Source: Rebecca billardiae RCC1528
Lineage: Eukaryota > Protista > Haptophyta
Assembly: GCA_965240325.2 (NCBI GenBank)
Contig: OZ251235.1
Location: forward strand, 124,001-188,000
Reading direction: 5' to 3'
Length of the DNA: 64,000 nucleotides
Shown: piece by piece, positions 3,507-39,100 of the stretch
Numbering within the stretch: position 1 is the first letter of the stretch
Layout of the letters: every line of letters starts with the position of its first letter
Notes under the pieces: generated by a model
Databases searched by the model: none
The model's input: only the letters and a program-made list of their open reading frames with translations
What the model was told of the DNA's origin: nothing
Position numbers and translations under genes: made by a program

Positions 3507-6500
3507 TCAGGGTGCCACACCCTTGAACGGCGCGCCGCCGGTGCCGGGCGCGCCACCGCCGCCGCCGCCACCGCCACTCGCGGCCGCGCCGCCGCCGAGC
3601 TTTGCGCGCGAGGGCTGAGTGCCAAACACACGGGCGGAGGCGGCGCGCATGCTGTCCATGCGCCTGGGCGGCGAGGACGGCCGCGCCGCGCCGCTCTCCT
3701 CGTCGCCGCCGTTCGGCGCCACCGGCTTGGCGGGCGTCGCGCCCGTCTTGGCCGCCGACTTTGGCGGCGATTCGGGCGGCGACGCCGGCGCCATCTTAGT
3801 GATGGCGACCGCGCTGAGCCCGTCGGCGCGCGACGCGTCTCGCTGCCGCACCATGTTGCGGACGAGGCGCATGCGCACGCCGGCCGAGCGCTTGCGCAGC
3901 CGCGCGCGCCGCTGCGACTCGAGCAGCGACTCGCGCAGCGCGTGCGCGAGCTCGAGCGTCGACGCGTGCATGTGCACGCCCGGCCGCAGCACCGACGGGT
4001 ACGTCTCGAAGAGCACGCGCGCGAGCCCGTCCGCGCCCCACTTGGCCGGGACGAAGGAGCGGCGGACGTGCTCCCACGGCGCGTAGAGCGGGTCGTTGGT
4101 GTCGTGCAGCAGCACGGGCAGCACCGGCAGCCTGGGCGGCAGCCCGTCCGCCACCGACGACGCCGCGTCCGTGCCGTCGTCCAGCTCCTCGGAGTCGGGC
4201 TCATCACGGATGCCCGCGACGGCGCACGCATTGGCGAGCGTGCGCGAGAGCTGCGGCGAGCGCGGCCAGAGGATGAGCACGGGGCCGTCCGCGTGCGCGC
4301 GCTGCGGCTCGGAGCCGCCGCCGCCGCCGAAGAGCCCGCGGCCACTCGGCGCCTCCGGCCGCTTACCCGCCTTACCCGCCTTACCCAGCTCGTACGGCGC
4401 GCACGCGCGCACGGGCTTGGTCAGCAGCGCGGCGATGTGGGCGAGCGGCCTGGGCTCGGCGTTGGCAAGCTGCTCCTCGTCGCGCTCCTGCGGCGCGCGG
4501 GGCGCGCGCGGAGAAGGATAGTGAGTGCGCGTCGGCGCGCAACGCGCGCGCGTGGGCCGCCATGCCCACGCGCGGCGGCATGGCGGCCCGCCCCGCGTCC
4601 GGTCCGCACGACGCGTCCGCCTCGTTTGGTGCGCGGGTGTGTGCCTTCGGCTCGAAGCGACGCGCCACCCCGCGGCGGCCTCGGCGCACCGCGCCCCCCC
4701 GCTCGAGCGCGGCGCGGCGGGTGCGTCCGGCGCGGCTTCACACCTCGTAAAACTCGCAGCGCACGGCGCGCACGGCGGAGGTGAGCAGCTGCGGCACCTG
4801 CGCGGGCGGCACGACGGTGGCCTCGGCGCGCCGCGCGGACGAGTTGCCGCCGGCGATGCTCGAGCGGCGCGCGACGCTCGGGCGGTGCTGGCCGGCGAGG
4901 CCCGGCTGTGCAGGCTGCTGTGCGCCGCCGCCGCCGCCGCCGCCCTTTTCGGCGCCGCCCGGCTTGTCGGCGCCGCCGCCCTGCCGCCCGCCCCCACCGC
5001 CGGCCGCGTGGTGCGCGTGGCGCGCGCCGCCCATCAGCAGCGCCGAGAGCGTCTTCATGTCGCGCTCCTGATACGCCGCCTTGATGCGCCCGAGCCGCCG
5101 CTGGTCGGTTACCACGACGCCGTAACCGAACGCGTCTGCGCGCAGCAGCAGCAGCGAGTTGCCGCCGGCGGGCGGCGGCACCGAGCGCCCGGGCTGCGGC
5201 ACGGCGGAGCCCGGCGCGGCGAACGGCGCTAGCAGCGGGTCCTCCTCGGGCGGGAAGCTCGCGGAAAGTTCGTTGGTGAGCGGCACGAGGTGGCCGAGCT
5301 CGGGCGGTGCGTCGAGCGCCGAGCCGGCGCCGCGGCCGCGCAGCCGGTTGGCGTAGGTGCTGAGCACGCTCGCGGCGCGCGCGAGCCAAGGCGCGCGCCG
5401 CCAGAGCGGCGCGAGGCGCGCGTACCGCGTCGAGACGGCGTGCACCGGGATCGACGCCGCCGCGTCCTCGCGCAGCAGCGCGTGCTCGAGCACGGCGCGC
5501 AGCGGCGCCGCCTCGGCCTCCTCCTTGTCCGCCTTGAGCCCGATCTGCAGCGTGCGCGCCTCGCCCTCGATCTCGCCGAGGTGCGGCTTGAGCCCGCCCG
5601 CGCGCCGCAGCAGCTGCGCAGCGCGCAGGTGCTCCGCGATCGCGAGCGCGGAGGCGGAGAGGTACGCACCCTCGTCCTCCGGCCGCCCGCCCTGCGCGTG
5701 CCACGGGATCATCTCCGCGTCCGGCACCGCGTCCAGCAGCGCCGCCGCCGCCGCCGAGCCCGACTCGGCGCACTGCGCGCGCAGCTGCTCGATGGAGACG
5801 CCACCACGCGACGGCTTGGCGACGTACACTACCACCACCTTCTTGTCCGGCGCGAGCTGCGCCGCCTGCAGCTGCGCGAGCGCGCCGCCGTCGGCGGTGA
5901 AGTAGCCGTCGGAGACGAGCACGATCACCGCGCGCGCCTGGTCCATCCGCTCGCGCCACTTCTTACCGGACTGGCCGATCACGAGGTCCGGGACGAGCGC
6001 GCTCACGCGCTCGCGCAGCTCGTTGGCCGGCTGCTGCCCCGAGTGCCACGCGTACGAGAGGAAGGCGTGGCACCCGCCGGCGACCTGCTCGTCGAGCCGC
6101 GTCGCGCGCATCCGCGTCTTGTCCAGCCGGTCGCGCAGCACGGGCAACTGCCGCTCCTGGTACGCGCGCCACGGCAGCAGCAGCACGGCGGTGAGCAGCA
6201 CGAGCACGAAGATACCGGTCAGATACGCACCCAGAATGGACTCGTAGAGGGAGAGCCGCAGCCCGCCCTCGAACAGCGCCTTGGCCGACCACGCGTCGAA
6301 GCCGGCGCGGAGCGAGAGGTTGTCCGCGCCCTCCGAGCCTGCGGTCAGGTGCACCGCAAGCGCGCCCACCAGCATCAGCTGCATCGCGAGCTGCGCGACG
6401 AGGACGAGGTCGTTGTCGAGCGCGGACTGCAGCGGCCGGATGCGCGCAAGCACCGCGACAAAGACGGACTGCACGAAGATCGCCGTGAGCAGCTGCGCGA

Positions 6501-9500
6501 CGGACGCGTACGACGACGCGTCCGCGCCGCCGCCCGAGTTGGGCGCGGCGCCGAGCACAGCCACGCGCACCAGGATCACGCCGCCGACCAGCACGAGCTT
6601 GCGCAATGTCTCCACCGCCTCCCACCAGACGGTGTGCGGCGCGAGCCCGACGCGGATGAAGGAGAGCGGCGACTGCCCCGCCACCCACTCCGAGTCGTCC
6701 TTGCGCAGCACGCGGTAGAAGGCGTACGGCAGCGCGACCGAGTAGACAAACATCGCGATGTACGCAAACGGCAGGTACGCCTCGTGCTCCGGAGAGTCGA
6801 AGTCGACCGAGTAGTCGGACTTAAGCACGCGCTTCGGCCGGCTCGCCTCGATGTCGACAGACTCCGTGTTGACTGCCGAGAAGAGCGACGCGGTCGCGGA
6901 GGGCAGGATGAGGTACGCGCTCATCAGGAACGGGCGGAGCACCGAGCCCACAAAGTCGCGCCGCTTGTCGAACAGCTTGGAGTGGTGCCGCGCGCGGTGG
7001 TAGAGCTCGAAGAGGAGCCACACGCCGCCGAAGACGGAGAGCACGCCGAGGGGCGCGAGCGCGATCCCGACCATTCCGGTGTGGTACCCCACGCCGATGC
7101 AGTTGAAGCCGTTGAGGTACAGGTTGTCGAAGGCGAGCCAGCGGAAGCCGCCGAGCGTCTCGCGGAACGCGACCGGCAGCGTGACGCCGTACACGCGCTC
7201 GAGCAGCAGCGTGAGCTGCACGAACGCGAGCGTGGTGCGCGCGGCCACCTTGAACGAGACGACGACCGCGGGCGTGACCGCGCCCGCCAGCGCCACCTTG
7301 AGCTGCGTGAGCAGCTTGCGCGAGGGCTTGGGCTTCACGCCCGGCTTGTGTCCCTTCAGCCAGCGCGCCAGCGCCGCCGCCTTCTCGTCCATCCGCCCGT
7401 GGAAGCTCGCGATGATCAGCACGACGCACACGAGCGAGAAGCCGATCATCAGCCCGAACACGAGCTCCGCGCGGCGCGTCGCCGCCGGGCAGCGCGCGCA
7501 ACGGTCGTCCGTGCCCATGAAGAAGCTGCGCGCGCGCGGCCGCGCAGAGACAGGCAGACACCCAACGGCACGCGCGCAGAAGCGGGGCAGAGCGAGGGGC
7601 GGCGGCGCGTGCGCGCGCGCCGGCCGCTCAGGCTCGCGAGTGGCGCGCGGGCGGCGGCACGCACCGCACGCCCGCCGGCTGGCGCGCGCGCGCGCACCCC
7701 GGATCGCACACTTCGCAGTATGGCCCGCCGTGGTGCTCGGCGCACAGGTCGCCGCTCTTGGCGCCCTTCGAGCCCGGGCACGCGCGCTCGCCGCGGCCGC
7801 ACTCGCGCAGGTCTGCCGTGTCCTTGGAGTTGCGCCAGAAGCCGGGCTTCACCTCGAGCGTGGCGAGCGTCGAGCCCACCCTCGCGCACGAGACGGACGC
7901 GTTGCACGCGAAGCAGATTCGGTTCGACTCGTTGTACTTGCGCTCGTAGTACCCCTGCTGGCACACGCAGCCCGTCCGTGCACTGCTGGCACACGTCGTT
8001 GTCGTCCGCGTCGTCCGCCGTGCGGAACGTGCCGATCGGGCACGGCTCGCTGCGCGCGCAGGCCGCCGGGCGCCGGGCGGGGCGGCGCGCGGCGCGCGGC
8101 GCAGAGCGTGAGGGCGAGCGCGCCTGCCCGGAGACGCGCGGCGCGGCCGTTACGCGCGACGGTTACGCACCACGGCGTGTTGCCCGTGCGGCCGAGCCCG
8201 GCGGGGCACGAGCCTCTGTACGTGAAGAGGCCGCTGGCGAAGGCGTCCTGCGCGCCCGTCTGGTTCTTGACGATCCGGATCGACGGCACGTCGGCGAAGT
8301 CGGCGGTGGGCTTGGGCGGCGCGACGCACCACGCAAACTGCGGCGAGATGATGCCGGGCTCGGCGCACGCCGCCTGCGCGCCTGTCACCTCGTCGACCAG
8401 AAAGATCTGCATCTGGTCGCACGGCACGTCGCACGCGTCGCCAAAGTTGGCGCCCTGCAGGAAGAGCGGGCCCGGGTCGTTGGGGTTGAACTCCTGCGCG
8501 TTCAGGATGAGGTTGACGACGGCGGAGGGCGGCGGCGGCGAGGGCGGCGGCGGCGAGGGCGGCGGCGAGGGCGGCGGCGAGGGCGGCGGCAGTGGCGGCG
8601 GCGGCGAGGGCGGCGGCGAGGGCGGCGGCGAGGGCGGAGGGCTCGGCGGCGGCGACGGCGGCGGCGGGCTGGGCGGCGGGCTCGGCGGCGGCGACGGCGG
8701 CGGCGGGCTGGGCGGCGGGCTGGGCGGCGGCGACGGCGGCGGCGAGGGCGGCGGCGTAGGCGGCGGCGGCGGGCTGGGCGGCGGGCTGGGCGGCGGGCTG
8801 GGCGGCGGGCTCGGCGGCGGTGACGGCGGCGGGCTCGGCGGCGGCGAGGGCGGCGGCGGGCTGGGCGGCGGGCTGGGCGGCGGGCTGGGCGGCGGCGAGG
8901 GCGGCGGGCTGGGCGGCGGCGAGGGCGGCGGGCTGGGCGGCGGGCTGGGCGGCGGCGAGGGCGGCGGCGGGCTCGGCGGAGGGCTGGGCGGCGGCGAGGG
9001 AGGCGGGCTCGGCGGCGGCGACGGCGGGCTGGGCGGCGGGAACGGCAGGCCGCGCGGCGGCGGCGGCGGCAGCGGCGGTGGGCTGGGCGGCGGGCTGGGC
9101 GGCGGGCTGGGCGGCGGGCTGGGCGGCGGCGGCGGCGGGCTCGGCGGCGGGCTCGGCGGCACATTGAGCAGCGCCACCTTCTGTACCGTCGCGCCCACCG
9201 CCTGCTGCAGCGCCGCGCCGTCCGTCTGCGCCACCGTCGCCACGACGTTCACCGGGTTGGGTTCGTCTGCCGGCTGGAAGATCTCCACGTCCACAACGGT
9301 CGAGCCTCCAAAGACGGCGATGATCCGGATGCGCCGCTCGTCGAAGTCGCAGCCGCACTCGGCAGAGAGCTGCGCGTCGATGAAGGCGATCAGCGCCGCC
9401 TCCTGTGTCGCGTTCCACGTGGCCACGTCCACGTTGAACTCGTAGGAGACGATCGTCACCTCGCCCGGAGGCGGCGGCGAAGGCGGCGGGTGCGGCGGCG

Positions 9501-11854
9501 GGCTGGGCGGCGGGCTGGGCGGCGGGCTCGGCGGCGGCGAGGGAGGCGGCGGTGGCGGCGGGCTCGGCGGTGGCGAGGGAGGCGGTGGGCTGGGCGGCGG
9601 GCTGGGCGGCGGGCTGGGCGGCGGCAGCGGCGGCGAGGCCGGGAGCGGCGACGGCGGAGGGCTTGGCGGCGGTCGCGGCGGCATCTGCGGGAGCGGCGAC
9701 GGCGGAGGGCTCGGCGGCGGTCGCGGCGGCAGCTGCGGGAGCGGTGACGGCGGAGGGCTCGGCGGCGGCCGCGGCGGCAGCTGCGGGAGCGGTGACGGCG
9801 GAGGGCTCGGCGGCGGCTGCGGTGGCAGCTGCGGGAGCGGCGAGGGCGGCGGCGAGGGCGGCGGCCGCGGCGGCTGGGCAGGGAGCGGCGAGGGCGGCGG
9901 CGAGGGTGGCGGGAGCGGCGGCAGCTGCGGGGGCGGCGACGGCTGAGGGCTCGGCGGCGGGAGCGGCGGTGGGCTCGGTGGCACGCTTGGTGGCGCCGAT
10001 GGCGGTGGGCTTGGTGGCGGGCTCGGTGGTGGTGACGGCGGAGGCGACGGTGGCGGGCTCGGCGGTGGTGGGCCCGGCGGCGGCAATGGCGGCGGCGATG
10101 GTGGAGGGCTCGGCGGTGGTGACGGCGGCGGTGGGCTCGGCGGCGGTGAAGGAGGCGGGCTCGGCGGTGGGCTCGGTGGTAGGCTCGGCGGCGGCGGGCT
10201 CGGCGGTGGGCTCGGTGGCACGCTCGGTGGTGGTGACGGCGGTGGGCTTGGTGGCGGGCTCGGAATGGGTGACGGCGGAGGCGACGGTGGCGGGCCCGGC
10301 GGTGGTGGGCCCGGCGGCGGCGATGGCGGCGGCGATGGTGGAGGGCTCGGCGGTGGTGACGGCGGCGGTGGGCTCGGCGGCAGTGATGGAGGCGGGCTCG
10401 GCGGCGGGCTCGGCGGCGGAGAGCTTGGCGGCGGAGGGCTCGGCGGCGGGATCGGTGGGCTCGGGGGCGGTGGGCTCGCGGCCGGGACGCGTGCACCAAG
10501 CTTGAGCATGTACACAGTCGTGTCGCCCGGTGCGCCCACCGCCGCATCCGCTTGCCCATCGCCGTCAAGATCGCCGAGCAGCGCCGCGCCGGTGCCGAAG
10601 ACGTCGTCCGCCGAGAGCGGCGAGCCGAAGCCGTCCGTCCCGTTGGTGATCAGCTCAGACTGGCGTACAGTGCCGTCCCTGCGGAGGTAGAGCACCAACG
10701 CCGCGCCCTTGTTCCCGTCGTAGTCAGGAGCTCCCACGAGCGCATCGGTGATGCCGTCGCCGTCAACGTCCTGCCCGGCGGAGACGGACCTCCCGAAGAC
10801 CATGCCAAACTGGTCGAGCCCTTCCACAGCGCCCCCCACCGACGCAGTCGACGACACCTTTTGCGCACGCTTGATCGAGCCGTCGGTGCGCAGAAAGAGT
10901 GTGTACACGGCGCCGGTGAAGAGGAAATCATCGCTGTCGAAAGGCGCTCCGACCATCACGTCGGTCACGCCGTCGCCGTCGAGATCGCCGTGCGAGGCGC
11001 AGGACCTGCCGAACCAAGGAGACAATCCTCCGTCAGTCAACGTCACGTTGTGCTTCACCTCCGACCTGACGGTGCCGTCGCTGTTGAGGAAGAGCACGAA
11101 GACGCTGTCGATCCCATACGCACCCACGAGCGCATCGGGCACGCCGTCGCCGTCAAGGTCGCCGAGGCGTGCAACGCACGAGCCGAAAGAATCATCATCT
11201 TGCAAGGCGTAGCTCAGCCCGCCCTCTGTCTCCGAGATCTTGGTCGACGCCTTGAGGGTGGCGTCGGCGTGCAGGAAGAGCACGTACGCTGCACCGCGGA
11301 AAAAGCCGCCACCGAACTCAAAAGTGTCGCCGACCATGATGTCGTCCACGCCGTCACCGTCAACGTCGCCGAGCACATCCATGCCGTCGCCCGGAACGCG
11401 GCTGCCGGCGATGACGAGCTTCGTGTTGCGCTTGACGGTGCCGTTGGCGTTGAGCAGCAGCGCATACAGCTCGCCCTCGAGTGCTCACGAGCAGATCGGG
11501 CACGCCGTCGGCGTCGAAGTCGCCCAGCGGCGCGAGACTGTACCCAAACGTGCCCGGTGAGCTCGGAGGGCTGACGTAGCCGACATCGTCGGGCGAGATG
11601 CGTGAGAGTGACGCCACCGTCTTGGGCGGAGACGGCGGCGGGCTCGGCGGCAGCGCACTCGGCGGCGGACTCGGTGGCGGGAGCGGCCCCGCGGTCGGCG
11701 GCCCCGCGGTCGGCGGCCCCGCGGCCGGCGGCCCTTGGCCCTGCGCTCCGATGACTACGGCGGCGATGACCGTGAGCACGGCGAGCGCCTGCCGGCCGCG
11801 GCTGGACGGCAGGCGATGCACTAGTCTACCGCGGACAATGTGTTCTCGGCGCAT
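3507..11854 (-). CDS. Giant receptor-like membrane protein: signal peptide, FG-GAP propeller, Pro-rich stalks, SEA-like, IPT/TIG, Cys-rich, ~9 TM, TIR-like; exons 11854-8171, 8049-7698, 7525-4744, 4487-3507; two 1-nt frameshifts (~11482, ~7970)
   Basis: Three GT..AG introns (8050-8170, 7526-7697, 4488-4743) are phase-consistent. Motifs in order: ALAVLTVIAAVVIGAQG, six FG...GDxDxDG repeats, SPPP arrays, GGSTVVDVEI, GANFG...CVAPP...FTY, CPIGTF/CQQGYY/KPGFWR/GPYCEVC, LKSDYS/WWEAVETLRK, HAFLSYAW. Confidence 0.75.
8520..10470 (-). repeat. Coding extensin/pherophorin-like SPPP tandem arrays, interrupted by a globular domain at ~9160-9460
   Basis: GGC-rich 12-15-nt units. A 48-nt unit (SPPPSPLPQLPPRPPP) repeats about 5 times at ~9640-9930. 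Segment ~9970-10150 recurs 237 nt away at ~10207-10385. Confidence 0.9.
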
Positions 11855-24438: not shown

Positions 24439-25695
24439 ATGGGTCAGCATGAGAGAGATGCGCGTGCCACCAAGCCTCCGCGGGCGTCATGGACGCTCGA
24501 GCTGCACAGCAAGTTCGAGTCGGCCGTCCAGAGCCTCGGCGGCATTGGCCACGCCATGCCAGTCGCAATCATGGAGGAGATGGGCGTGCCTGGATTGACG
24601 AGGGAGCAGGTCAAGAGCCACCTTCAAAGGTACAAGAACAGCTTGCGGACAGCCTCATCAAGCGCGCCCAGTGCGACTGACGCCTCCTCGGGCCAGGATG
24701 GCGAAGTGTGGTGGCCGACGCAACACTACTCCGTCTGCAGCCTCGCCGCCAACGGCACGTGGTCCGAGCAGCAGGCGCACGTTCAGATGCCCGGACTCGA
24801 GGGTGGCGGGCGTATGCCTGGCCCGTATACGCCGCCATTCGCCGCCCGGATGCCCCCCGGCCCGCTAGGGACCAGAACTCGAATGGATGGCGTTGCGGCA
24901 ACAGCCGCCGATCAGCAGAGTGGTGGGAATCCTCCTCAGCCGCGTGTCCCTTTGTGGGAGCCATCGCATGAGAGCCACCCCGTCCACCCGCCCGGGTACA
25001 CGTATGCCTCGATACAGCAGCCTCCACCACGCACGCCGCAGATGCACGCCTGCGGACAGGTGCTCCCGCAGCAGCACGGGGCATTGGTGAGGCACGGCAC
25101 GTGGCTGCAGCCGCAGCAAGCTGAGCCATCTTCTTCTTACTGCGGCCACCACATGTCCAACGGCGGGATGATGATGACGGCAGTGGGGCCACACGGCGCG
25201 ATCGCAAACGCGGTGCCGCCCGTCAGAGCCCTGTCCGGCGCCGCTGTCCCAATACCCAGCCCGACCGCGCGCATGCATCAGCCCGCAGGCCATGAATCTT
25301 CACGCGGCTGGCACGCACAGCCCGGAGGTGGAGGAGCAGGCGGCAGCGGAGACGAAGCCCCCGTGTGCGCACGCACTGCCCGCCGCTTCGAGCGGCAGCT
25401 GCTTCCAGCACCAGCCTCGTGGAGTAACGGGGGCTCGATTGCAGCCGGGCACAGCGAAGACCTCGACGACGAGCGGAGCTGGTGTGAGCTCCGCCGCATC
25501 CACCACGAGCTTACTAATTCGCTTGACCAGCAGCTGGAGAGGGCACGGCACCATCCACGAGTGCGAGCAAAAGCTCTCCGGAGAGCGCGAAGGGAAGCGC
25601 TCAGCCTGCGGAGAGGCGCGTGGGCTCTGCTCAAGACATGTCAGGACTTGGAGCTGGAGATGATCTGCAAGGAGATGGACCCTGCCGCCGGCTGA
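24439..25695 (+). CDS. GARP/Myb (SHAQKYF class) transcription factor, possibly PHR1/PSR1-like
   Basis: KPPRASWTLELHSKFESAVQSLGG...IMEEMGVPGLTREQVKSHLQRYK. C-terminal coiled coil ELRRIHHELTNSLDQQLE. Confidence 0.85.
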   Translation: MGQHERDARATKPPRASWTLELHSKFESAVQSLGGIGHAMPVAIMEEMGVPGLTREQVKSHLQRYKNSLRTASSSAPSATDASSGQDGEVWWPTQHYSVCSLAANGTWSEQQAHVQMPGLEGGGRMPGPYTPPFAARMPPGPLGTRTRMDGVAATAADQQSGGNPPQPRVPLWEPSHESHPVHPPGYTYASIQQPPPRTPQMHACGQVLPQQHGALVRHGTWLQPQQAEPSSSYCGHHMSNGGMMMTAVGPHGAIANAVPPVRALSGAAVPIPSPTARMHQPAGHESSRGWHAQPGGGGAGGSGDEAPVCARTARRFERQLLPAPASWSNGGSIAAGHSEDLDDERSWCELRRIHHELTNSLDQQLERARHHPRVRAKALRRARREALSLRRGAWALLKTCQDLELEMICKEMDPAAG

Positions 25696-28605: not shown

Positions 28606-30861
28606 ATGACCGCGGCGTCGACGCCGGCGGCGCCGGGCACAGCGCTCACCGATGCCCAGAGAGAGCGCATGGCGCGCGCGCGAGCAGATGCCATCGCTCG
28701 CAAGGAGGCCCGCGCTGCCTCGCGCTCCGGCAGCGTGGCACCCCCGGCCGTCACGACGGTCGCGCCTCTGCCGGCCGTGGCGCCGCCGCTGCCGGCGCGC
28801 GCGCAGGAGCCCACCGCGACGATCGCCGCGTGGCTGCACGTCGACGACGCGAGTGCGGCGCCCCGCGAAGCGCTCGACGCGATCATTACCGCCTCGCCCT
28901 CGTGCGCGCTCGCGCGCGCGCGCCAAGACGCCGCGGCTCGCGATCAGCCGGGCGGCTCGAACAGCCCGCACCTTCCATCCGCGCGCGCCGAGCCGATTCT
29001 CGTGCTGACGATCGAGCACGTGGGCGAGGGTACGCCCGCCCCAATCGCGCGCGAGCTCGAGCGCATGGGCTGCGCGCGCGCAGACGCGCTCGCGGACAGC
29101 GTGCCCTTCCGCGCGCGCGCCACGCCGAGCGGCGCGCGCGTGCGGGGCTGGTGCCTTCCCCTCGAGGGCCATGACGCCATTGTGCGCGTCCTCGGCGCGT
29201 ACGCGCCGTCGGCGAGCCGGCCGCCGCGCGAAGGGGTCGTCGTGTACGGCCGCGCAGGCCACGCGGGCGCAAGCTCGGTGCAGCCGCTGCCTCCATGGCT
29301 GCTGCGCCTTTTTGCCCTGCCCGCGCAGCGGCCGAGCGCCGTGGCACCGCGCGGTGCGGGCAGTGGCGGAGCGGGCGAGGAGGGCGTGGATGCGGGATGG
29401 GCGGCGTTCCTCGCCTCCCCCGCCGGCCGATGCATCCCCGCCGCCCTCGCCGCCACGCTGCACGCGCACCAGCGCGCCGCCGTCGTCGAGATCGTGCTGG
29501 CACGCCAGGGCAGGTGCGCGTGTGACTGCGGCGACATCAGCGCCCCGCGCCGGCCTGCGCGGTCGCCTCACCTCCGCGTCCCCGCCGCGCGCCGCCCACT
29601 GAGCAGGAGCCTGCTGGCTGATGAGATGGGGCTGGGCAAGACACTCACGGCACTGGCAGTCGCGTGCGCGTACGGCGGCGCGCGCGGTCGAGAGGGCGCG
29701 GCGGAGGCGGCGGGCGCGGCTGCCGAGCGTGCGCCGCCTGCCCTCGAGCCGAGTGCGCGCCCTGCTGCTCCCGCGCTGCCCGTCGCACCCCCGGGCGGCG
29801 CGGGCGGCGGCGCGGCGCCACGAGCCGCCGCGCCGCGCGCCGCATCCGGCGCGGCCGAGCTCCCTCCCTGGTGCGGCAGCGGCGAGTGGCCACTGCTCGT
29901 GATCTGCCCGGCGGGCATGCGCGAGGCGTGGGCGCAGGCGCTCGAGCGCTGGGTGCCGCTCCTCGGCCCGACAGACATCCAGGCGCCCACCAGCACCTCC
30001 TCGGTGCTCAGGCCGGTGGCAGCGACCGTGCTCTCGCAGACGCTGCTGCCGCGGCTCGGCGCGCGCGTCGAGGCGTGCTACGCGGCGGCGGGCGCGCCCT
30101 TTGGCGTGGCGATCGTGGACGAGGTGCACCGCCTGTGCAACGAGTCGCTCACGCAGATGTGCATCGCGCGGCGGCTCACGCGCCGCGCGGCGCGGCTGCT
30201 GCTGCTGAGCGGCACGCCGATCGGCGACAGCCTGACGGAGGCGTGGCACCTGCTCGAGTGGCTGCGGGCGCACGACGTGTGCGCGGCGCTCGGCCTGAGC
30301 GCCGCGCTCTGGGCCGAGCGGTACACGCCCCTCGTGCCGAGCGCCGCGCCGGGCGGCGGCGGTGGCGGGCGCGGCGGGCGCGGCGGTGGCGCGCGCGGCG
30401 GGCGCGGCGTGCGCGCCGACCGCACCGCGGCCAATGCGTCGGAGCTGCACTTTGTGCTCACGCGGACGTGCATGGTGCGCAGGCTGAAGGGCGAGCTGCC
30501 CGGGGGCGCGCTGCCGCCCAAGCGCTCTGAGCGCGTGCGGCTGCGCGTGTGCAAGCGCGCCGAGCTCGCGGTGAGCGGGCGCGGCGCCCCAAGCAGCGTG
30601 CACGCGCTCGTGCAGCGCTGCCGCGCGGACGAGGAGGACGCGTGCGCCGACGACGCGGGCAGCGGCGCGCTCAGCGGGCTGAGCGAGTCGCAGCAGCACG
30701 CCCTCACGCTCTTCGCCGAGCTGCGCGCGGCGGAGGCGTGCGGCGCCGCCGAGCGCTCGATGCGGATGAACAGGCTGTGGATGGCGACGGGCGAGGCGAA
30801 GGTGGGCGCCGCCATCTGCTACCTCGCGCGCCGAGGCCTGCTGCGCGACGCGGCCGCCACA

Positions 30862-30896
<35 letters not shown>

Positions 30897-33585
30897 GCCG
30901 TCCGCCGCGGGCGCGGGCGCGGGCGCAGACGGCCGCGCGGCGGCGGAGGGAGACGACGGCGCGCTCGAGCGCCGCACCCTCCTCTTCGTGCGCCACCTGA
31001 GCGTGCTGCGCGCGCTGTGCACCGGGCTGCACACGCTGGGCGTGCCGCACGCAGCCATCCACGGCGCCATGCCCAGCGCCGAGCGGCTGGCGCTGTGCCG
31101 CACCTTCAACGGCGAGCTCAGCGCTGAGCCGCACTTGGCCGGCGCAGCCGCCGCCGCGGCCGGCGGCGTCGGCGGCGCCAAGGGTGGGCGCGGCGGCGAG
31201 GCGGGCGCGCGCGACGCGCGGCGCCCGGCGGTGATGCTGGCGACGATGGAGGCGTGCTCGGAGGGCCTCACGCTCACCGGCGCGACAGACGTGGTGTTCG
31301 CTGAGCTGCACTGGTGCGGCCAGCTGCTCAGGCAGGCGGAGGCGCGCGCGCACCGGCATGGACAGACGCGCGAGGTCTGCGTGCACTACCTGTGCTGGGA
31401 GGGCTCGCTCGACGAGTGGCTGTGGGGGACTGCCGTGCGCTCGCTCGGCACCAGCACGCGCGCGACGGACGGCGGCGCCCGCGCGGCAGAGGCGGCGCTG
31501 GCCGGCCCCGCGCTGCCTCGCGCCCGACCGCCGCGCACGCCGGGCCGCGCGCAGCCGGGCGCGGGGGCTGGCGCTGCCGAGGCGGACGCCGAGCCCGCGT
31601 GCGCGCGCGCGGCCGACTGCGGCGCCGACGCGGCCGCACGCGCCTCCGACGTGCCTCTTGCCTGCAGCACAGGGGCCGCGGCGGCGCCGGCCGCGGCGGC
31701 GCCGGTGACTTCCGACGCGGACGCGCCCGCAGCGCTCACGACCGCCTCAGCGGATGCGCCCGCGCAAATCGGCACGGAGCCAACGGCGGCACCGGCGGGC
31801 ACCGCCGCCACGGCGCTCTCCGCCGACTTCGCAGCGGCAGCCGGCACAGGGGCGGCCTCGGTGGCCGCCGTCGCGCCGTCGACGGCAGCCGACGCGCCCG
31901 CGCTCGCCGCCACGCCCGCGCACGGCGACGCGTCACTCCTGGACAGCTCCGCCATTTGCTCGGCGTCGTGCCTGCGGTTCGTCGTGTCGCGACTGTCTGG
32001 GCGCGCTCACCTGTGCGACCGCGCCGGCAGGCCGCTCGGCGCGAGCTTCTGTCCGCTCGAGGCGGCGGTGGCGCACGGCGCGACCGCAGCTGCGGTGGCG
32101 CAGGCGCTCGCGCCAGGCGCGGCAGACGCGCACGACGCGAGCAGCGCGCCCGCGCGCGGCGAGGCGGACGACGCCACCGTCGTCGCCGCCGCCGCCACCG
32201 CCGCCGCGCGTGGCGCGATGGCGGCCGCCTCGGATGCGTGCTGGCCCGCGCCCATCCTGCACGCACCGCCGCCGCTCCGGCACGCGTGCGCGCAGTTTGC
32301 GAGTGCGTGGACGTCCCTCGAGCCTCGGCTGCGGTACGAGTGCTCTCACTCGCTGCTGTGGCTGCCGCTGCCCGAGGCGGTGGACAGCATCCGCGCGGAG
32401 CGTACGGCGCACGTGGAGGCTGTGCCCGGGGGCGGGGCGAGCCGCACGCTTGAGCGCGGCGCGCTGCCGCTGAGGCCGCGGCCGCCGCCCGTCGGAGCGG
32501 CGGGGGAGGAGGGCGCGCTGGCTGAGGGCGCGCGCGGCGCAGAGCGCGCGCGGGAGGACGCCGAGCGCGGACGGATTGGGGACGAGTCGGCACCCGCGCC
32601 GGCTGCGCGCGCGCCGGCTGCTGCCCCAAGCCTCGCTGACTCCGACAGCGGCGCGCCCGCCCCGGGCCTAACGCGCGTGCAGCTGCGCTGGGGGATGCAC
32701 ACCCTGGCCGTCTGGCAGGACGCGCCGCTGGCGCCGCTCGCGGCAGCGGCCGCGCGGCTGCCCACGGGCAAGCTGGCCGCGGCGTGCGGCGGCGGCCTGC
32801 TCGCGCGCCAGTCGAAGCGCGCGAGCGGACAGCTCGTGCCCAGCGAGGTGGCCGCCAACGCGCGCCGCGCCGTGGACGTGGCGGTGGCGCTGGGCGCGGG
32901 CGTGCGCGTGCGGCACTGCCACTTCTGCGCGTGCGCCTTCGCGCCCGGCGTGCAGCTCGAGCCCTCGTCCGCCTTCTGCTCGGAGCGGTGCGCGCAGGAG
33001 TGGCACGTGCGCGTGCTGTGCAACCAGACGCGCCGCATCTGCTTCGAGCGCGACCGCGGCGTGTGCGCGCGCTGCGGTGCGGACATGCACGCGGCCTACC
33101 TCGCGATCCGACTGCTGAGCCCAGAGCAGCGCCGCGCGGAGCTCGTGCGCCGCTGCCCGGGGTTCGCCACCTCCGGCTGGCTGCGCCACGCGATGTTTGC
33201 GCCGCACGAGGGGCGGCTGTGGCACGCAGACCACGTCGTGCCCGTCAAGGACGGTGGCGGTGGGACGGGCGCGGACAACCTGCAGACGCTGTGCGTGCCG
33301 TGCCATCGGGGCAAGACGGCCAACGACGGGACAGCGGCCAGGCCGGCCGGGCGCCCCGGTGCGACGATGCAGCCCTGCGCGACCGGCTCGGCCGCGCCCC
33401 CCATGCCGAAACGCCCCAAGCTCGTGCTCGCCAAGCCGCAGCAGCCGCCGTGCGTGGCGACGACGGCTACGGTCATCGTCGTCGCAACTCCGATTCTCAT
33501 GACGACGATGACATCATTGATGACGAGATCGTGCACAACTGTGACGACAACGACGACGACGACGACAACGACGAACTACGAATGA
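28606..33585 (+). CDS. ZRANB3: ZRANB3-like SNF2 annealing helicase with C-terminal HNH endonuclease; in-frame intron 29514-29606
   Basis: LLADEMGLGKT, WPLLVICPA, IVDEVH, LLLLSGTP, GLTLTGATDVVFAELHW, QAEARAHRHGQ, FVVSRLSGRAHL, ERDRGVCARC, WHADHVVPVKDGGG...NLQTLCVPCHRGKT. Confidence 0.85.
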
Positions 33586-34997: not shown

Positions 34998-37379
34998 TCA
35001 GCGCTGCCGCCTGGATGAGGCGGCAGGGGGCGGCGTCCACTCGTTGTAGATGGCCGCAGCTGACACGCCTTCTTCCGGCGGCATGGCGTGCAGCTTGAGC
35101 TGCGCGAGCCGATTGCCGACGCCTCGAAAGCGCATGGCGATGGTCGTCGTCGCCCGAGGCCGGAGCACGCCCGCATGGCACGCCTCCGTGCCCACGGCCG
35201 TGCCATTCAGGTAGAGCGCAAACGCTTGGATGCTCGGCTGGTAGCTCAGCAGCCAGTGCGCCCACGCGTGCGCGCGCATGGCGGGCGCCTGGAATATCGG
35301 CATCACTCGCTGATTCCGCCAGCGCACACGGATCTGGCCGGGAGACAGCTCGATCAGCAGCCTTTGCCCGGTGCTGCTCGCCATGGCGAACTCCTGCGTG
35401 CCGCCCGGCGCGAGCGCCGACCACGCGCTCAGGGCCCAAGCCAACGGCAGCTCGTCCACAGAGGCGCTCAACTGGACCGGCGCCGAGGCTGCGCCCAGCT
35501 CCAGGAAGCCCTGGCTGAAGTCGAGCGGCTGCTTCGTCGTGTTCAGCCGCAGGTCCGGCCCCGAGGCGGCGCGCACATCCGAGACGAGCGGCCAGTGCGC
35601 CACGAGCGAGAGCGATGGTGCCTCGCTCGTCTGTGGCGCTGCGCCCTCGGCGTAGGCGCGCGGGCTTAGGACGGGCCCAGCGAGCGCCTTGCCGGTCGCG
35701 TTCAGATGTTCGAACACGCGGATCTTGTGCCCCTCGTAGATGACCACGCGGTGCGTCTGCCGCCAGCTCAGGATCGGGTCGTCGAGGGCGGGCGGCGTGT
35801 ACCCTTCCGGCCACTGCGGCTTCTGGCAGCAGCCAATGGACGGCAGGTCGTAGTCGTTGGCGCTCACCAGCACGCGCAGGATGGAGTGCATCCACACGAG
35901 CGGGCGCGCGACGGCGGGGCTTTCGGGCGAGTACTGCCCGAAGAGGACATAGCTCATCTGCTTCGCGCGCGTGAGGTTGAACGGCCGGCAGCTCGAGTAG
36001 AAGCGGTAGAAGCGGTTGCCCAGCTCAGCCGTGCCGTTGATGATGTCCGCTTGGACCACGTCCCGGTCCCACGTGCAGATGGTCACGCCGTCGATCGCCT
36101 TGGCGCGCGAGAGGAGCTTGGCGAGGAGGTCGTCGCCGAGGTCGCCGCGCTGTGCCACGTGGTACGCCGGCATCCCCGGCTCGAGCAGCCCGAGCTGCTC
36201 GGCGGTCACGCCGTTGAACATCGTGACCCGCCGCGTCCACTGCGCGTGATTGTGCCACCAGCTGCAGCGCGGGCGCGCGGCGTGCGGGCACGGGCACAGC
36301 GGGTCAGATGGGGCGTGTGGAATCAGAGCGGCGGGCACCGCGCGCGCCCGGAGACGCCAAAAGCTGCCGCGCGGCGCAGATCGCATGCGCACGCATGGGC
36401 GCAGGCGCGCAGGCGCGCGCGCGCACGTCCACACGACACGTCCGTCCATCGGCGAGTATGACGCAGCGGACCAGAGGTGGCTCGGGCGGTCGCCGGGGAC
36501 ATGGAAGGTGTTCGCGTGGCCCTTCGCCTCGCCATCGGCGTGCGTGATGTGCCCGCTCGTGAAGAGCGTCAACGGCTTGGGCGCGGCCGCCTCGTTGCGC
36601 TCGTAGCGCAGCGCCACCGTGAACCAGTGCTCGAGCGGCGCCGAGCCGGCCGGCCGCACGTCGTTCACCTCCGACCAGCCGGTGAGCGGCGTGCGCATGC
36701 GCATGGCGTATCCCTTGGGGAAGAGGCGGACGTGGCACCCGACGCCGCCCTCGTCGAGCGGGCAGTCCGAGTCGCCGTGCGCGATCAGCTCGTGCATGTA
36801 CTTGGTCGTGCCGTTCTGCACGAGGTGCCAGTGGTGCTGGTGGATCGGAGGGAAGTCGAGCAGCCGGGACGCGTTGTCCGTCGAGCCGACGAAGGCGGCG
36901 GTGACGTACATGCGCTCGGGCAGCGAGGGATGGCCCATGGTGAAGGTCGTCTGCGTCCAGTCGTTGCCGCCCGTCGTCACGACCGGGCCCACACGCGAAA
37001 AGAACCACTCGCCGCCGTGCAGGCACCATGTCTGCTCGAGCCGGGGCGAGCTGATCGGACGGTAGTCGAATTTGCCGAGCAGGTCGTGTATCGGCCCCAC
37101 GGTCCAGGACGTGTCGTGCTTGGGCAGGCCCATCGTCTCCGCGGACCACTCGCACCCGCGCAGCAGCGACTCGAGCATCTCGCGGTTCATGCGGTTGCCC
37201 TCGGCACCCGGGAGCATGTGCTCGCACCATGCGCGATACTCGGGGTCCGCGTGCTTGGCGCACGTATCCGGCGTCTCGACCCATCCCTCACCCTCATCGA
37301 CGACGCGCGGCAGCCGCGGCCCACTCGCGGCCCAAGCGAGGAGGGCAGCGCCCAGCACGAGTGCAGGGTGCAGCACCAT
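34998..37379 (-). CDS. Secreted His-rich protein, putative copper monooxygenase (PHM-like fold) with C-terminal LamG/ConA-like domain; in-frame intron 36262-36426
   Basis: Signal MVLHPALVLGAALLAWAASG; PPIHQHHWHL, HGDSDC, WWHNH, WMH. C-terminal WALSAW...WAHWLLSY...ALYLNG...QLKLH...AIYN. Confidence 0.55.
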   Translation of the reverse strand: MVLHPALVLGAALLAWAASGPRLPRVVDEGEGWVETPDTCAKHADPEYRAWCEHMLPGAEGNRMNREMLESLLRGCEWSAETMGLPKHDTSWTVGPIHDLLGKFDYRPISSPRLEQTWCLHGGEWFFSRVGPVVTTGGNDWTQTTFTMGHPSLPERMYVTAAFVGSTDNASRLLDFPPIHQHHWHLVQNGTTKYMHELIAHGDSDCPLDEGGVGCHVRLFPKGYAMRMRTPLTGWSEVNDVRPAGSAPLEHWFTVALRYERNEAAAPKPLTLFTSGHITHADGEAKGHANTFHVPGDRPSHLWSAASYSPMDGRVVWTCARAPARLRPCVRMRSAPRGSFWRLRARAVPAALIPHAPSDPLCPCPHAARPRCSWWHNHAQWTRRVTMFNGVTAEQLGLLEPGMPAYHVAQRGDLGDDLLAKLLSRAKAIDGVTICTWDRDVVQADIINGTAELGNRFYRFYSSCRPFNLTRAKQMSYVLFGQYSPESPAVARPLVWMHSILRVLVSANDYDLPSIGCCQKPQWPEGYTPPALDDPILSWRQTHRVVIYEGHKIRVFEHLNATGKALAGPVLSPRAYAEGAAPQTSEAPSLSLVAHWPLVSDVRAASGPDLRLNTTKQPLDFSQGFLELGAASAPVQLSASVDELPLAWALSAWSALAPGGTQEFAMASSTGQRLLIELSPGQIRVRWRNQRVMPIFQAPAMRAHAWAHWLLSYQPSIQAFALYLNGTAVGTEACHAGVLRPRATTTIAMRFRGVGNRLAQLKLHAMPPEEGVSAAAIYNEWTPPPAASSRRQR

Positions 37380-39100
37380 CTGGGGCTGTACGCCGCACGG
37401 GCACCCCTCCCGCTCGGGGCACGATGGCTGCCGGCAGTTGAGGCAAGCCTTGCCGCAAGGCTCGGTGGTTCGTGAATGGCGACCCGCTACGTGCCAGACT
37501 GCCAGTGCGGCACGACGCACAAGGGCCGAGGTATGGGAGGCATGAGAGTGCGGGCACGGCAGGGCGCGGGGGTTTGGTGGTCGTAGATGACTCTTCTTCA
37601 GGCCTTGGCATCGCTGGGCGACTCGTATCCACCTCTCTCCAGCTCCTCTTGTCCCTGCTTCCGCATGGCCAGTGATCGACGTGCACGCCGACCGTGCACG
37701 GGCAAAGGCAAGTGCATAACGCCGGGGGAGGTCGGAGTTGTGGGTGGTGGATGCTTGCGCATCTTTCATGGAACGCCGTCAGCGCTCGCAGCTCGCCTTC
37801 AGCTTCGCTCGCCGCTCCAGGGCCAGCGTCTCCGCTCCCGTGGTAGTATGCCAGGCATGACGGTGATTGCTTTTTGAATTGGGATTTTCTGCAGCTTCTG
37901 TCGTGTATGGCTCTGGAGCTCTTCTTGGGGGTGTCTGCAAGGATCGGATGGGCTCGAGAGCTCGCGCACGCGCTGGTCAGCAGCCTCCCTCTGAAGGCTA
38001 CGTGCACTGCTCACTTTCACCCATCCAGGAGCGCAGGGTAAGAAACCGAGCAGGGAGCCGTGCGGGCAGGCGGACGATCAAAGATCACAGCAGCGGTCGC
38101 TTGCACATGCCAAGCGACACTGTGGAGGTAGATTGCAGGCGCCAATGTGCATAGATACCTCCTGCACGTGCATGCCACACAACCCGTAACGCCACACGCG
38201 CCGTCGTGCCCGTGGGCGTGGTGTCCGGGTGGGCGCTCCCTCGTTGTGCGAGAGATGGCCCACGCTGGGAGCGATGTGCAAGCCATCTCGCGGATCGCGC
38301 GGCAAGGCTTTTGAGCCGGACTGGCGCCCCGAGGGGGGCTATACGATTTGGGCGTCGGTGGGGGAAGAGACGCAAACTGACACAGTCACAGCTCAGCGCC
38401 CTGTGGATGTGGTCCGCCACCTCCTGCGAGTCGCCGGACCGCCTCGGACTCGGAGCGGGTGGCCGCTGGCCCGATGATTCGTGCGGCCGGGTGGCATCCT
38501 GTCCGGCCCTGATCACGATTCAGTTCACACTGCGCCACTGCCAGCGCTGACGCTTGCCGCGAGACGATGTGAGGACATTGTCAGACTGGGCACCAGTCCG
38601 AGTCAGTGACACCGTTCCACAGGAGTCGCGGGTAAGTTTCCACATCTACCCGTACGACGAGTCGACGTACCGGCGGAGGCACGAGGCGACACTATCTCGG
38701 CCAGTCCGGAGCCCCAACCCCCGTGGGTTTGGGGCTGCCCCGGACCCATCATCCGTCATGTGACACCGTCCGCCTCGCCCCTTCGTTCGGGGCGGTCCTA
38801 GCAGCCCCGCCCGTGGTCGCTTCCGGTCGGGACCTATCGCCCACACGCGCGGTAGGGAGCACCCACTACGCTTCTTCTTCAGTCTAACAGACATGAGTCA
38901 TGACGCTGTCGCTGACGAGGACTGACGATGGCCTCGTCCCATTCTAAACGGTTGAGTGTACCCCCATACAGTGATTATGAAGTATGACTACGGTCGGAAC
39001 GCTGAATACATATATGCCATCCTCCGGCCCATCTCGCGCGCCCGGCAACACAGCGCGAGCGAATGGACCCATCGCTGCTGCGTATGCTGCCACCGCGCGA

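Follow-up and report, generated by a model that had tools for sequence, protein, structure and literature searches.

The 64,000-nucleotide stretch analyzed here (the window; positions 124,001 to 188,000 of contig OZ251235.1 of the haptophyte Rebecca billardiae RCC1528) carries, on its minus strand from 11854 down to 3507, the coding pieces of a putative multidomain surface receptor with a sum of about 2,600 residues. Haptophytes drive ocean blooms and giant viruses end them, and we know of almost no immune receptors from these algae. Our results indicate that the receptor type at this locus is a family and not a singleton, and that the copy in the window is probably a non-enzymatic or decaying member of this large, uncharacterized family, whose modular surface receptors occur in haptophytes and other marine protists. 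An earlier note, made from the sequence alone, had assembled a protein of about 2,600 residues by splicing three phase-consistent introns and bridging two one-nucleotide frameshifts; the GT-AG sites and both breaks are indeed present in the sequence. All coordinates of the receptor are for the minus strand of the window, and its exons were searched individually.

The G+C content around the locus is 65-83%. Because it is so high, long open frames are found on both strands and the length of an open reading frame (ORF) is not by itself evidence for a gene. The opposite-strand ORFs at 5290-8823 (+) and 9552-10505 (+), which reach 1177 residues, are not genes but mirror frames of the GC-rich coding DNA, rich in Arg, Gly and Ala. 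On the minus strand, the first frame starts with an ATG at 11854 and encodes a hydrophobic N terminus, a Pro-rich linker and the first FG-GAP repeat. As read by eye from the translation, the ATG and 39 N-terminal residues, with their hydrophobic core, form a putative signal peptide (11738-11854), and the short linker follows as residues 40-79 (11618-11737). The first break in the reading frame is a G-run within blade 1 of the head (11474-11476), where the frame shifts by one base inside 11470-11484. After this break the frame stays open for 1,211 codons, up to 7852, and its coding part would end at a donor, TG/GTGCGT, with 8170 as the first intron base. The three putative GT-AG introns (8050-8170, 7526-7697 and 4488-4743) are consistent in phase and have in common a GTG donor and a GC-rich acceptor ending in CAG.

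The extracellular part begins with an FG-GAP head at 10480-11563. Pfam detects one repeat in the first ORF (11363-11854; E = 7.1e-05) and five in an ORF of 1177 residues (E = 7.8e-22), with FG-GAP (PF01839) scores of 77.2 and 23 bits that lie above the cut-off of 22.1. Each of the six repeats has a D-x-D-x-D-G calcium-loop motif (11521-11504, 11367-11350, 11160-11143, 10986-10969, 10770-10753 and 10572-10555), and the six blades with such loops described in the earlier note are accordingly all located. Integrin alpha chains likewise have FG-GAP repeats with these loops; however, they have seven repeats, thigh and calf domains and a single membrane helix, whereas the six repeats detected here are followed by Ser-Pro rods, Cys-rich repeats and nine helices. 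An integrin identity was rejected because there are no thigh or calf domains, the anchor is different and no beta-chain partner is known.

Below the head lie the two stalks of the original description, which by composition are Ser-Pro rods with 70-76% Pro and about 20% Ser. Rod 1 (9466-10479) has 338 residues, 70% Pro and 18% Ser, and rod 2 (8527-9156) has 210 residues and 76% Pro; in a polyproline-II conformation they would extend for approximately 105 nm and 65 nm, respectively. They are separated by a globular insert of 103 residues (9157-9465) which had been described as SEA-like. This assignment is unconfirmed, as the insert has no Pfam or PDB match and its top Atlas match is an unnamed haptophyte cluster (0.93), with SEA ranked seventh (0.84). 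The insert contains the sequence F-G-G-S-T-V-V-D-V, which is reminiscent of the SEA self-cleavage motif G/SVVV. The region between rod 2 and the first intron (8171-8526) had been read as an IPT/TIG domain, and here the evidence is divided: TIG clusters make up 27 of the 30 Atlas matches of the 120 residues before intron 1 (features score of 0.92), and the region matches the N terminus of one relative, P0009, at residues 7-69 (E = 7e-6), but neither Pfam nor the PDB has a match for it. We therefore describe this region, tentatively, as IPT/TIG-like.

Putative intron 1 (8050-8170; 121 nucleotides, TG/GTGCGT ... GCGCAG/C) was recognized from its splice sites, as was an alternative form at 7983-8170 (188 nucleotides) that keeps the frame. 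Next comes an Ephrin_rec_like fragment of 25 residues (7974-8049; CPxGTF ... CxxC), whose exon may still be in use or may have become part of the intron, and which matches PF07699 with an E value of 0.021 and the relatives P0004 and P0103 at about 6e-4. The second frame break, again in a G-run, is found at 7971-7973. It is followed by a Cys-rich juxtamembrane exon of 91 residues (7698-7972), of which 7700-7969 matches 54 relatives in phmmer searches (best E = 1.9e-25), always just before the first membrane helix, and overlaps Pfam DUF7630 in the relatives P0009 and P0084; the Cys-rich repeats noticed in front of the membrane thus correspond to an exon conserved in 54 relatives. Putative intron 2 (7526-7697; 172 nucleotides, GG/GTGCGC ... 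GCGCAG/C, phase 2) joins this exon in phase to a 926-codon frame which encodes the membrane module and the TIR domain.

The last CxxC motif and the nine-helix membrane module occupy 6145-7525, as defined by the family profile and an AlphaFold2 (AF2) model, with the first transmembrane helix at 7408-7464 and the ninth at 6175-6243. Prediction for the first 650 residues of the 926-residue frame, with a 37-sequence alignment, gave a mean pLDDT of 81.5 and a pTM of 0.79, and the membrane module folded alone had a pLDDT of 82.9. The model has nine long helices and the sequence contains the LxxDxS and WWE...RK motifs, in line with the module of about nine transmembrane helices that had been proposed. 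No Pfam family, including PF06011 (TRP, fungal Flc/Pkd2-type), matches the module of the window protein at E values up to 10. The only tie of the module to a named family is a weak match to PF06011 in 4 of 37 members with the same cassette (best E = 6e-5, all below the cut-off).

The domain that follows (5617-6075; residues 482-634 of the 926-residue ORF) was identified as a degenerate TIR fold by VIA, Foldseek and the family profile. In the model it is a flavodoxin-like TIR fold, which superposes on the TIR domain of SARM1 with a VIA Z of 14.7 and an rmsd of 1.9 A over 124 residues at 20% identity. TIR-1 of Caenorhabditis elegans is equally close (Z of 14.7), followed by plant, oyster, IL-1R-family, MyD88 and bacterial TIRs, and 19 of the top 20 VIA rows are TIR or SEFIR domains. 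Foldseek gave a probability of 1.00 for the TIRs of RUN1, L6, SNC1 and TLR1, and a TIR-only family profile built with the query excluded matches the window domain with an E value of 1.6e-16. A PDB sequence search with the window TIR alone returned only noise, and the family profile was needed to reach the PDB TIRs. The TIR-like domain first noticed at about 5640-6075 therefore has the fold expected of it. With the Cys-rich domain placed outside, the loops predicted to lie inside contain 30 Lys and Arg, as against 14 for the outer ones; this excess predicts a cytoplasmic TIR, as had been supposed, and not an extracellular one.

Downstream of the TIR domain lies a region (4744-5616) with no recognizable domain, for which no match was found in Pfam or among the fetched relatives. 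The 926-codon frame stops at 4738-4740, right after a possible donor (GAG/GTGTGA), and this in-frame stop would be held within putative intron 3 (4488-4743; 256 nucleotides, GAG/GTGTGA ... CGCAG/G), a further reading from splice sites. The putative last exon (3507-4487) is a coding-like ORF of 326 residues and a stop codon, with an acceptor at 4488 and no in-frame ATG just upstream; it has no match in Pfam or among the relatives. The gene may also end at 4738 instead of continuing via intron 3 into the last exon.

The family was uncovered by a full HMMER search of 1.84 billion representatives with the first 650 residues of the 926-residue frame as the query. There were 500 matches at E values of 0.001 or below and 30 at 1e-10 or below, nearly all of them from marine metagenomes and metatranscriptomes, and in many of them a single alignment covers query residues 90-610 and thereby both the membrane module and the TIR. 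When the query was left out of the family profile, the profile matched the window frame with an E value of 1.8e-90 over profile positions 17-589, and the best protein relative is 48% identical to the window protein. Word-indexed protein searches with the 926-residue ORF and with alignment A1 were blank even as HMMER gave 500 relatives; such blanks do not mean absence for the GC-rich, low-complexity-flanked proteins of this genome. A scan of NCBIfam returned nothing. Named proteins occur in two 90%-identity clusters of relatives, namely, XP_005768852.1 of Emiliania huxleyi ('TIR domain-containing protein') and KAL1498974.1 of Prymnesium parvum. Among Atlas shape clusters, the closest are mostly from Haptophyta and have Ephrin_rec_like and TIR_2, while the remoter ones contain cnidarian DUF7630/LRR proteins and Ephrin_rec_like/TRP proteins of giant viruses, so that both of these groups are among the shape neighbors of the window protein. 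No paralog of the receptor is present within the 64-kb window.

Full-length relatives share a constant cassette of Ephrin_rec_like, membrane module and TIR_2 as defined by Pfam, with TIR_2 matched in 33 of 37 cassette members. Above the cassette the heads vary, and include LRR, right-handed beta-helix, GH19 chitinase-like, ANF_receptor, fn3, MAM, C-type lectin, TNFR repeat and FG-GAP types; some members have added C-terminal PDZ or C2 domains. One relative, P0087, has seven FG-GAP_3 repeats (E = 6.8e-56), a Cys-rich region, the membrane module and a family-type TIR (E = 6.5e-30), and its layout demonstrates that the combination of an FG-GAP head and a TIR exists elsewhere. Two others, P0122 and P0167, combine this membrane module with an FG-GAP head but lack a TIR. 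The architecture search that the earlier note had suggested thus recovers the cassette under many heads, and the layout, for which that note knew of no characterized receptor, is no singleton, as relatives share the Cys-rich/nine-helix/TIR cassette and P0087 has the FG-GAP propeller as well.

There is some evidence from the literature on related proteins. In a 2025 study of Gephyrocapsa huxleyi, 15 TIR genes were reported to be differentially expressed; the ones among them that the virus induces at an early stage encode proteins in which an intracellular TIR with the conserved Glu comes after an extracellular region or after several membrane helices (PMC12489294). The shared Cys-rich/nine-helix cassette is not described there as a family. 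A 2026 preprint found that diverse eukaryotic TIRs are enzymatically active, and pointed out a clade to which haptophyte TIRs with a conserved Glu belong (10.64898/2026.04.20.719644). In our literature search, no paper was found that mentions DUF7630 or describes a shared cassette with swapped heads. The two named haptophyte proteins, XP_005768852.1 and KAL1498974.1, have the membrane and TIR cassette in common with the window protein; however, these proteins and those of the G. huxleyi study keep the catalytic Glu, and neither Ser-Pro rods nor an FG-GAP head have been reported for any of them.

The TIR domain of the window copy has lost several conserved motifs of the family. The family consensus reads HLFLSH.W..GQDQ ... 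PG..VFLDVDDL ... FLS.GYF.S.NC.RE, and in a comparison of the family profile with the PDB the Glu that is invariant in the family coincides with the catalytic one of TIR-1 and of plant TIRs, the motif VFLDVDDL ... NC..RE aligning with VFIDVDKL ... HKEL of TIR-1. At the position of the catalytic Glu the window protein has Ala548, and its helix alpha-C is without an acidic residue. A six-residue gap replaces LDVDDL in the BB-loop region, an invariant His is changed to Tyr and an Asp to Gln, and Ser, Asn, Cys, Arg and Glu are replaced by Ala, Gly, Gly, Leu and Ala. Conserved columns are retained at 14 of 37 positions in the TIR as against 17 of 27 in the membrane part. Among the 36 sequences compared, the window TIR has the lowest mean identity (0.25), and its TIR-to-membrane identity ratio of 1.14 is also the lowest, the others ranging from 1.33 to 1.80. 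The motifs are intact in the full-length proteins most closely related to the window copy (P0002, P0003 and P0004), which places the loss specifically in this lineage. Judged from these residues, the window TIR is almost certainly incapable of NAD+ cleavage, and the direct coupling of the receptor to TIR signalling that had been envisaged is doubtful for this copy, where the catalytic Glu, the adjacent Ser, Asn, Cys and Arg, and LDVDDL are absent. A conserved post-TIR domain of many relatives is also absent from the window protein. In the relatives this domain has the consensus LLYL...T...G....LA..V..A....L.HE.D..R..C.F..FF..TP (residues about 1360-1460 of P0087) and no Pfam name in our scans.

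A second data set bears on the state of the reading frame. The contigs of run X1 are short and of low depth, are 94-100% identical to the window and contain intron sequence; run X1 therefore behaves as DNA, and splicing is not readable from it. One contig spans 7764-8036 with four substitutions and no gap, and has the break at 7971-7973. As the break is found in a second, non-identical data set it is probably no assembly error, and we conclude that frame break 2 is probably genuine in the DNA. This support covers frame break 2 only, the break near 11475 being outside those contigs. The same GTGCGT donor spliced to an acceptor at 7983 would give the 188-nucleotide form of intron 1, which restores the frame and retains the juxtamembrane C-x-C-x-x-G-Y-Y start; this downstream acceptor could, on the sequence, bypass frame break 2. 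An intronic rescue of frame break 1 was considered and rejected, as every frame-restoring GT/GC-AG pair either deletes conserved blade strands or is 13-19 nucleotides long. Hence, an intact product of 2,600 residues would require splicing to the 7983 acceptor and, in addition, some unexplained rescue of the break near 11475.

The X1 contigs also give an indication of selection. Over the Cys-rich exon and the first membrane helices, six of the eight codons that differ between the window and X1 are changed synonymously, as are three of the four in the Cys-rich exon itself (7698-7972). As these changes include the exon after the shared break, they argue for continued selection after the break arose. 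In the last exon two of six changes are synonymous, and the others are conservative replacements. The X1 contig at 3775-4019, within the putative last exon, is about 94% identical to the window (14 differences in 245 bases) and is more diverged than the contigs of the membrane module and the Cys-rich exon.

Our results suggest that the copy in the window is a non-enzymatic or decaying member of the family, and we consider this probable. In the plan of the family, an extracellular head that varies between members is followed by Cys-rich repeats of the Ephrin_rec_like and DUF7630 types, the nine-helix module and a cytoplasmic SARM1-like TIR which, in most members, retains the catalytic Glu. Binding of a ligand at the head may be passed via the membrane module such that TIR domains are brought together, and this assembly may switch on NAD+ cleavage or the production of a signal nucleotide, by analogy with SARM1, plant TIRs and bacterial Thoeris. 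In the window copy, a calcium-binding propeller of six FG-GAP repeats would be held approximately 170 nm off the membrane by the two Ser-Pro rods. The loss of the catalytic Glu and of LDVDDL points to a non-enzymatic partner or scaffold, which, if expressed, would act in signalling only when paired with active paralogs, or to a copy that is heading to decay. As for the tall, stalked sensor of the earlier note, its domain order, its TIR fold and the predicted cytoplasmic location of the TIR stand, but its existence as one intact protein is doubtful in view of the frame break.

Several observations weigh against a functional partner of this kind and against the proposed mechanism. The gene has two frame breaks, one of them seen in both data sets. 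Relatives are longer by 13-20 residues exactly at frame break 2, which suggests an old deletion, and the membrane module has lost, from an outer loop, a pair of conserved Cys (positions 218 and 240); the residue deficit and the lost pair fit decay as well as they fit neofunctionalization. The selection signal comprises only eight codons, from low-depth contigs. The introns and the single-transcript model are predictions from the DNA sequence. The Pfam TIR_2 profile (PF13676) scores 17.5-18.4 bits on the window TIR, under the gathering cut-off of 28, while the relatives score 28-36 bits. Finally, the membrane module has no relative among solved structures: the best Foldseek E value is 0.04 and the best VIA Z is 8.8, for a designed helical bundle, with nothing above helical-bundle noise. 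A channel, transporter or G protein-coupled receptor identity for the module was rejected, as the structure matches are at noise level.

The explanation that survives best beside this one is that the locus is a unitary pseudogene, a former FG-GAP/nine-helix/TIR receptor that was disabled by two one-nucleotide breaks and a deletion in a Cys-rich repeat and whose TIR is drifting. The breaks at 11474-11476 and 7971-7973, the second being shared with a contig of the other run, are what would be expected of such a gene, as are the shortfall of 13-20 residues at the second break, the loss of the catalytic Glu, LDVDDL, the Cys pair and other invariant residues, and a TIR that is the least conserved of the 36 sequences compared. 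The long open frames offer little counterweight at this G+C content, as the opposite strand also has ORFs of up to 1177 residues. However, the bias to synonymous changes (six of eight codons), which extends to the exon right after the shared break, indicates selection after the break, and a strong donor spliced to the acceptor at 7983 would cleanly remove the second break. The predicted exons are all free of internal stop codons, and AF2 folds the membrane module and the TIR with a pLDDT above 80. A pseudogene is thus a serious possibility, but a minority one.

A further-reaching version of the favored reading, in which the copy is a non-enzymatic family member, appears unlikely in its full form. 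Here the family would be the haptophyte and protist counterpart of Toll-like receptors, with a germline repertoire of heads acting through the nine-helix module on a SARM1-type enzymatic TIR, and the window copy would be a catalytically dead sensor or decoy subunit whose tall head reaches beyond the scale or cell covering, which signals only when paired with active paralogs, as RRS1 does with RPS4, and in which the break is bypassed by the shifted acceptor. Toll-like receptors have a like logic of outer recognition head, membrane anchor and cytoplasmic TIR, and the TIR of TLR1 is among the fold matches; they are, however, single-pass proteins with LRR heads, whereas the window protein is nine-pass with Cys-rich repeats and an FG-GAP head, and there is no sequence relation outside the TIR. 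Similarly, SARM1 and TIR-1 provide the best structural match for the window TIR, but SARM1 is a cytosolic protein that also has ARM and SAM domains and whose Glu is active, while the window TIR sits on a nine-helix receptor and has Ala in place of the Glu.

The original proposal was of an intact and active receptor, in which a ligand bound by the propeller would directly set off signalling by the TIR, either as an enzyme or as an adaptor. The domain order and TIR fold were confirmed, the TIR is predicted to be cytoplasmic, the catalytic Glu is kept by family members and early virus infection induces related membrane TIR genes in a haptophyte (PMC12489294). However, this copy has neither the catalytic Glu nor the BB-loop motif and has at least one real frame break; adaptor-type signalling would be possible, but no partner is known, and we regard this proposal as quite improbable. 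Least probable of all are two separate genes, one whose FG-GAP/Ser-Pro product would be secreted or attached to the wall and would end near 8170, and a membrane and TIR gene from an ATG at 7518, for, while the 926-residue ORF does start with an ATG and the break at 7971-7973 and two introns separate the parts, the Cys-rich domain (7698-7972) lies upstream of that ATG and in relatives is always directly before the membrane module of the same protein, intron 2 links it in phase to the last CxxC motif, its codon changes are biased to synonymous ones, and relatives have head and cassette in one chain.

The copy alone is less striking than was first thought: its layout has relatives, its catalytic site has been lost and the gene may be defective. 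Its main value lies in the family that it reveals, in which many binding heads are combined with one Cys-rich/nine-helix/SARM1-like TIR cassette. This family is a plausible pathogen-sensing repertoire, whose members can now be identified. As a natural dead-TIR variant with a very tall stalked head, the window copy may also serve as a comparison for the need for NADase activity as opposed to TIR scaffolding.

The window also contains other ORFs with recognizable domains. A Myb DNA-binding ORF is found at 24439-25692 (+), and a 923-residue ORF with a Laminin_G_3/concanavalin-like domain at 35001-37769 (-); neither is related to the receptor. Between them, at 28606-33582 (+), a 1,659-residue ORF has SNF2-related and Helicase_C domains and a C-terminal HNH endonuclease, in an order like that of ZRANB3/annealing helicase.

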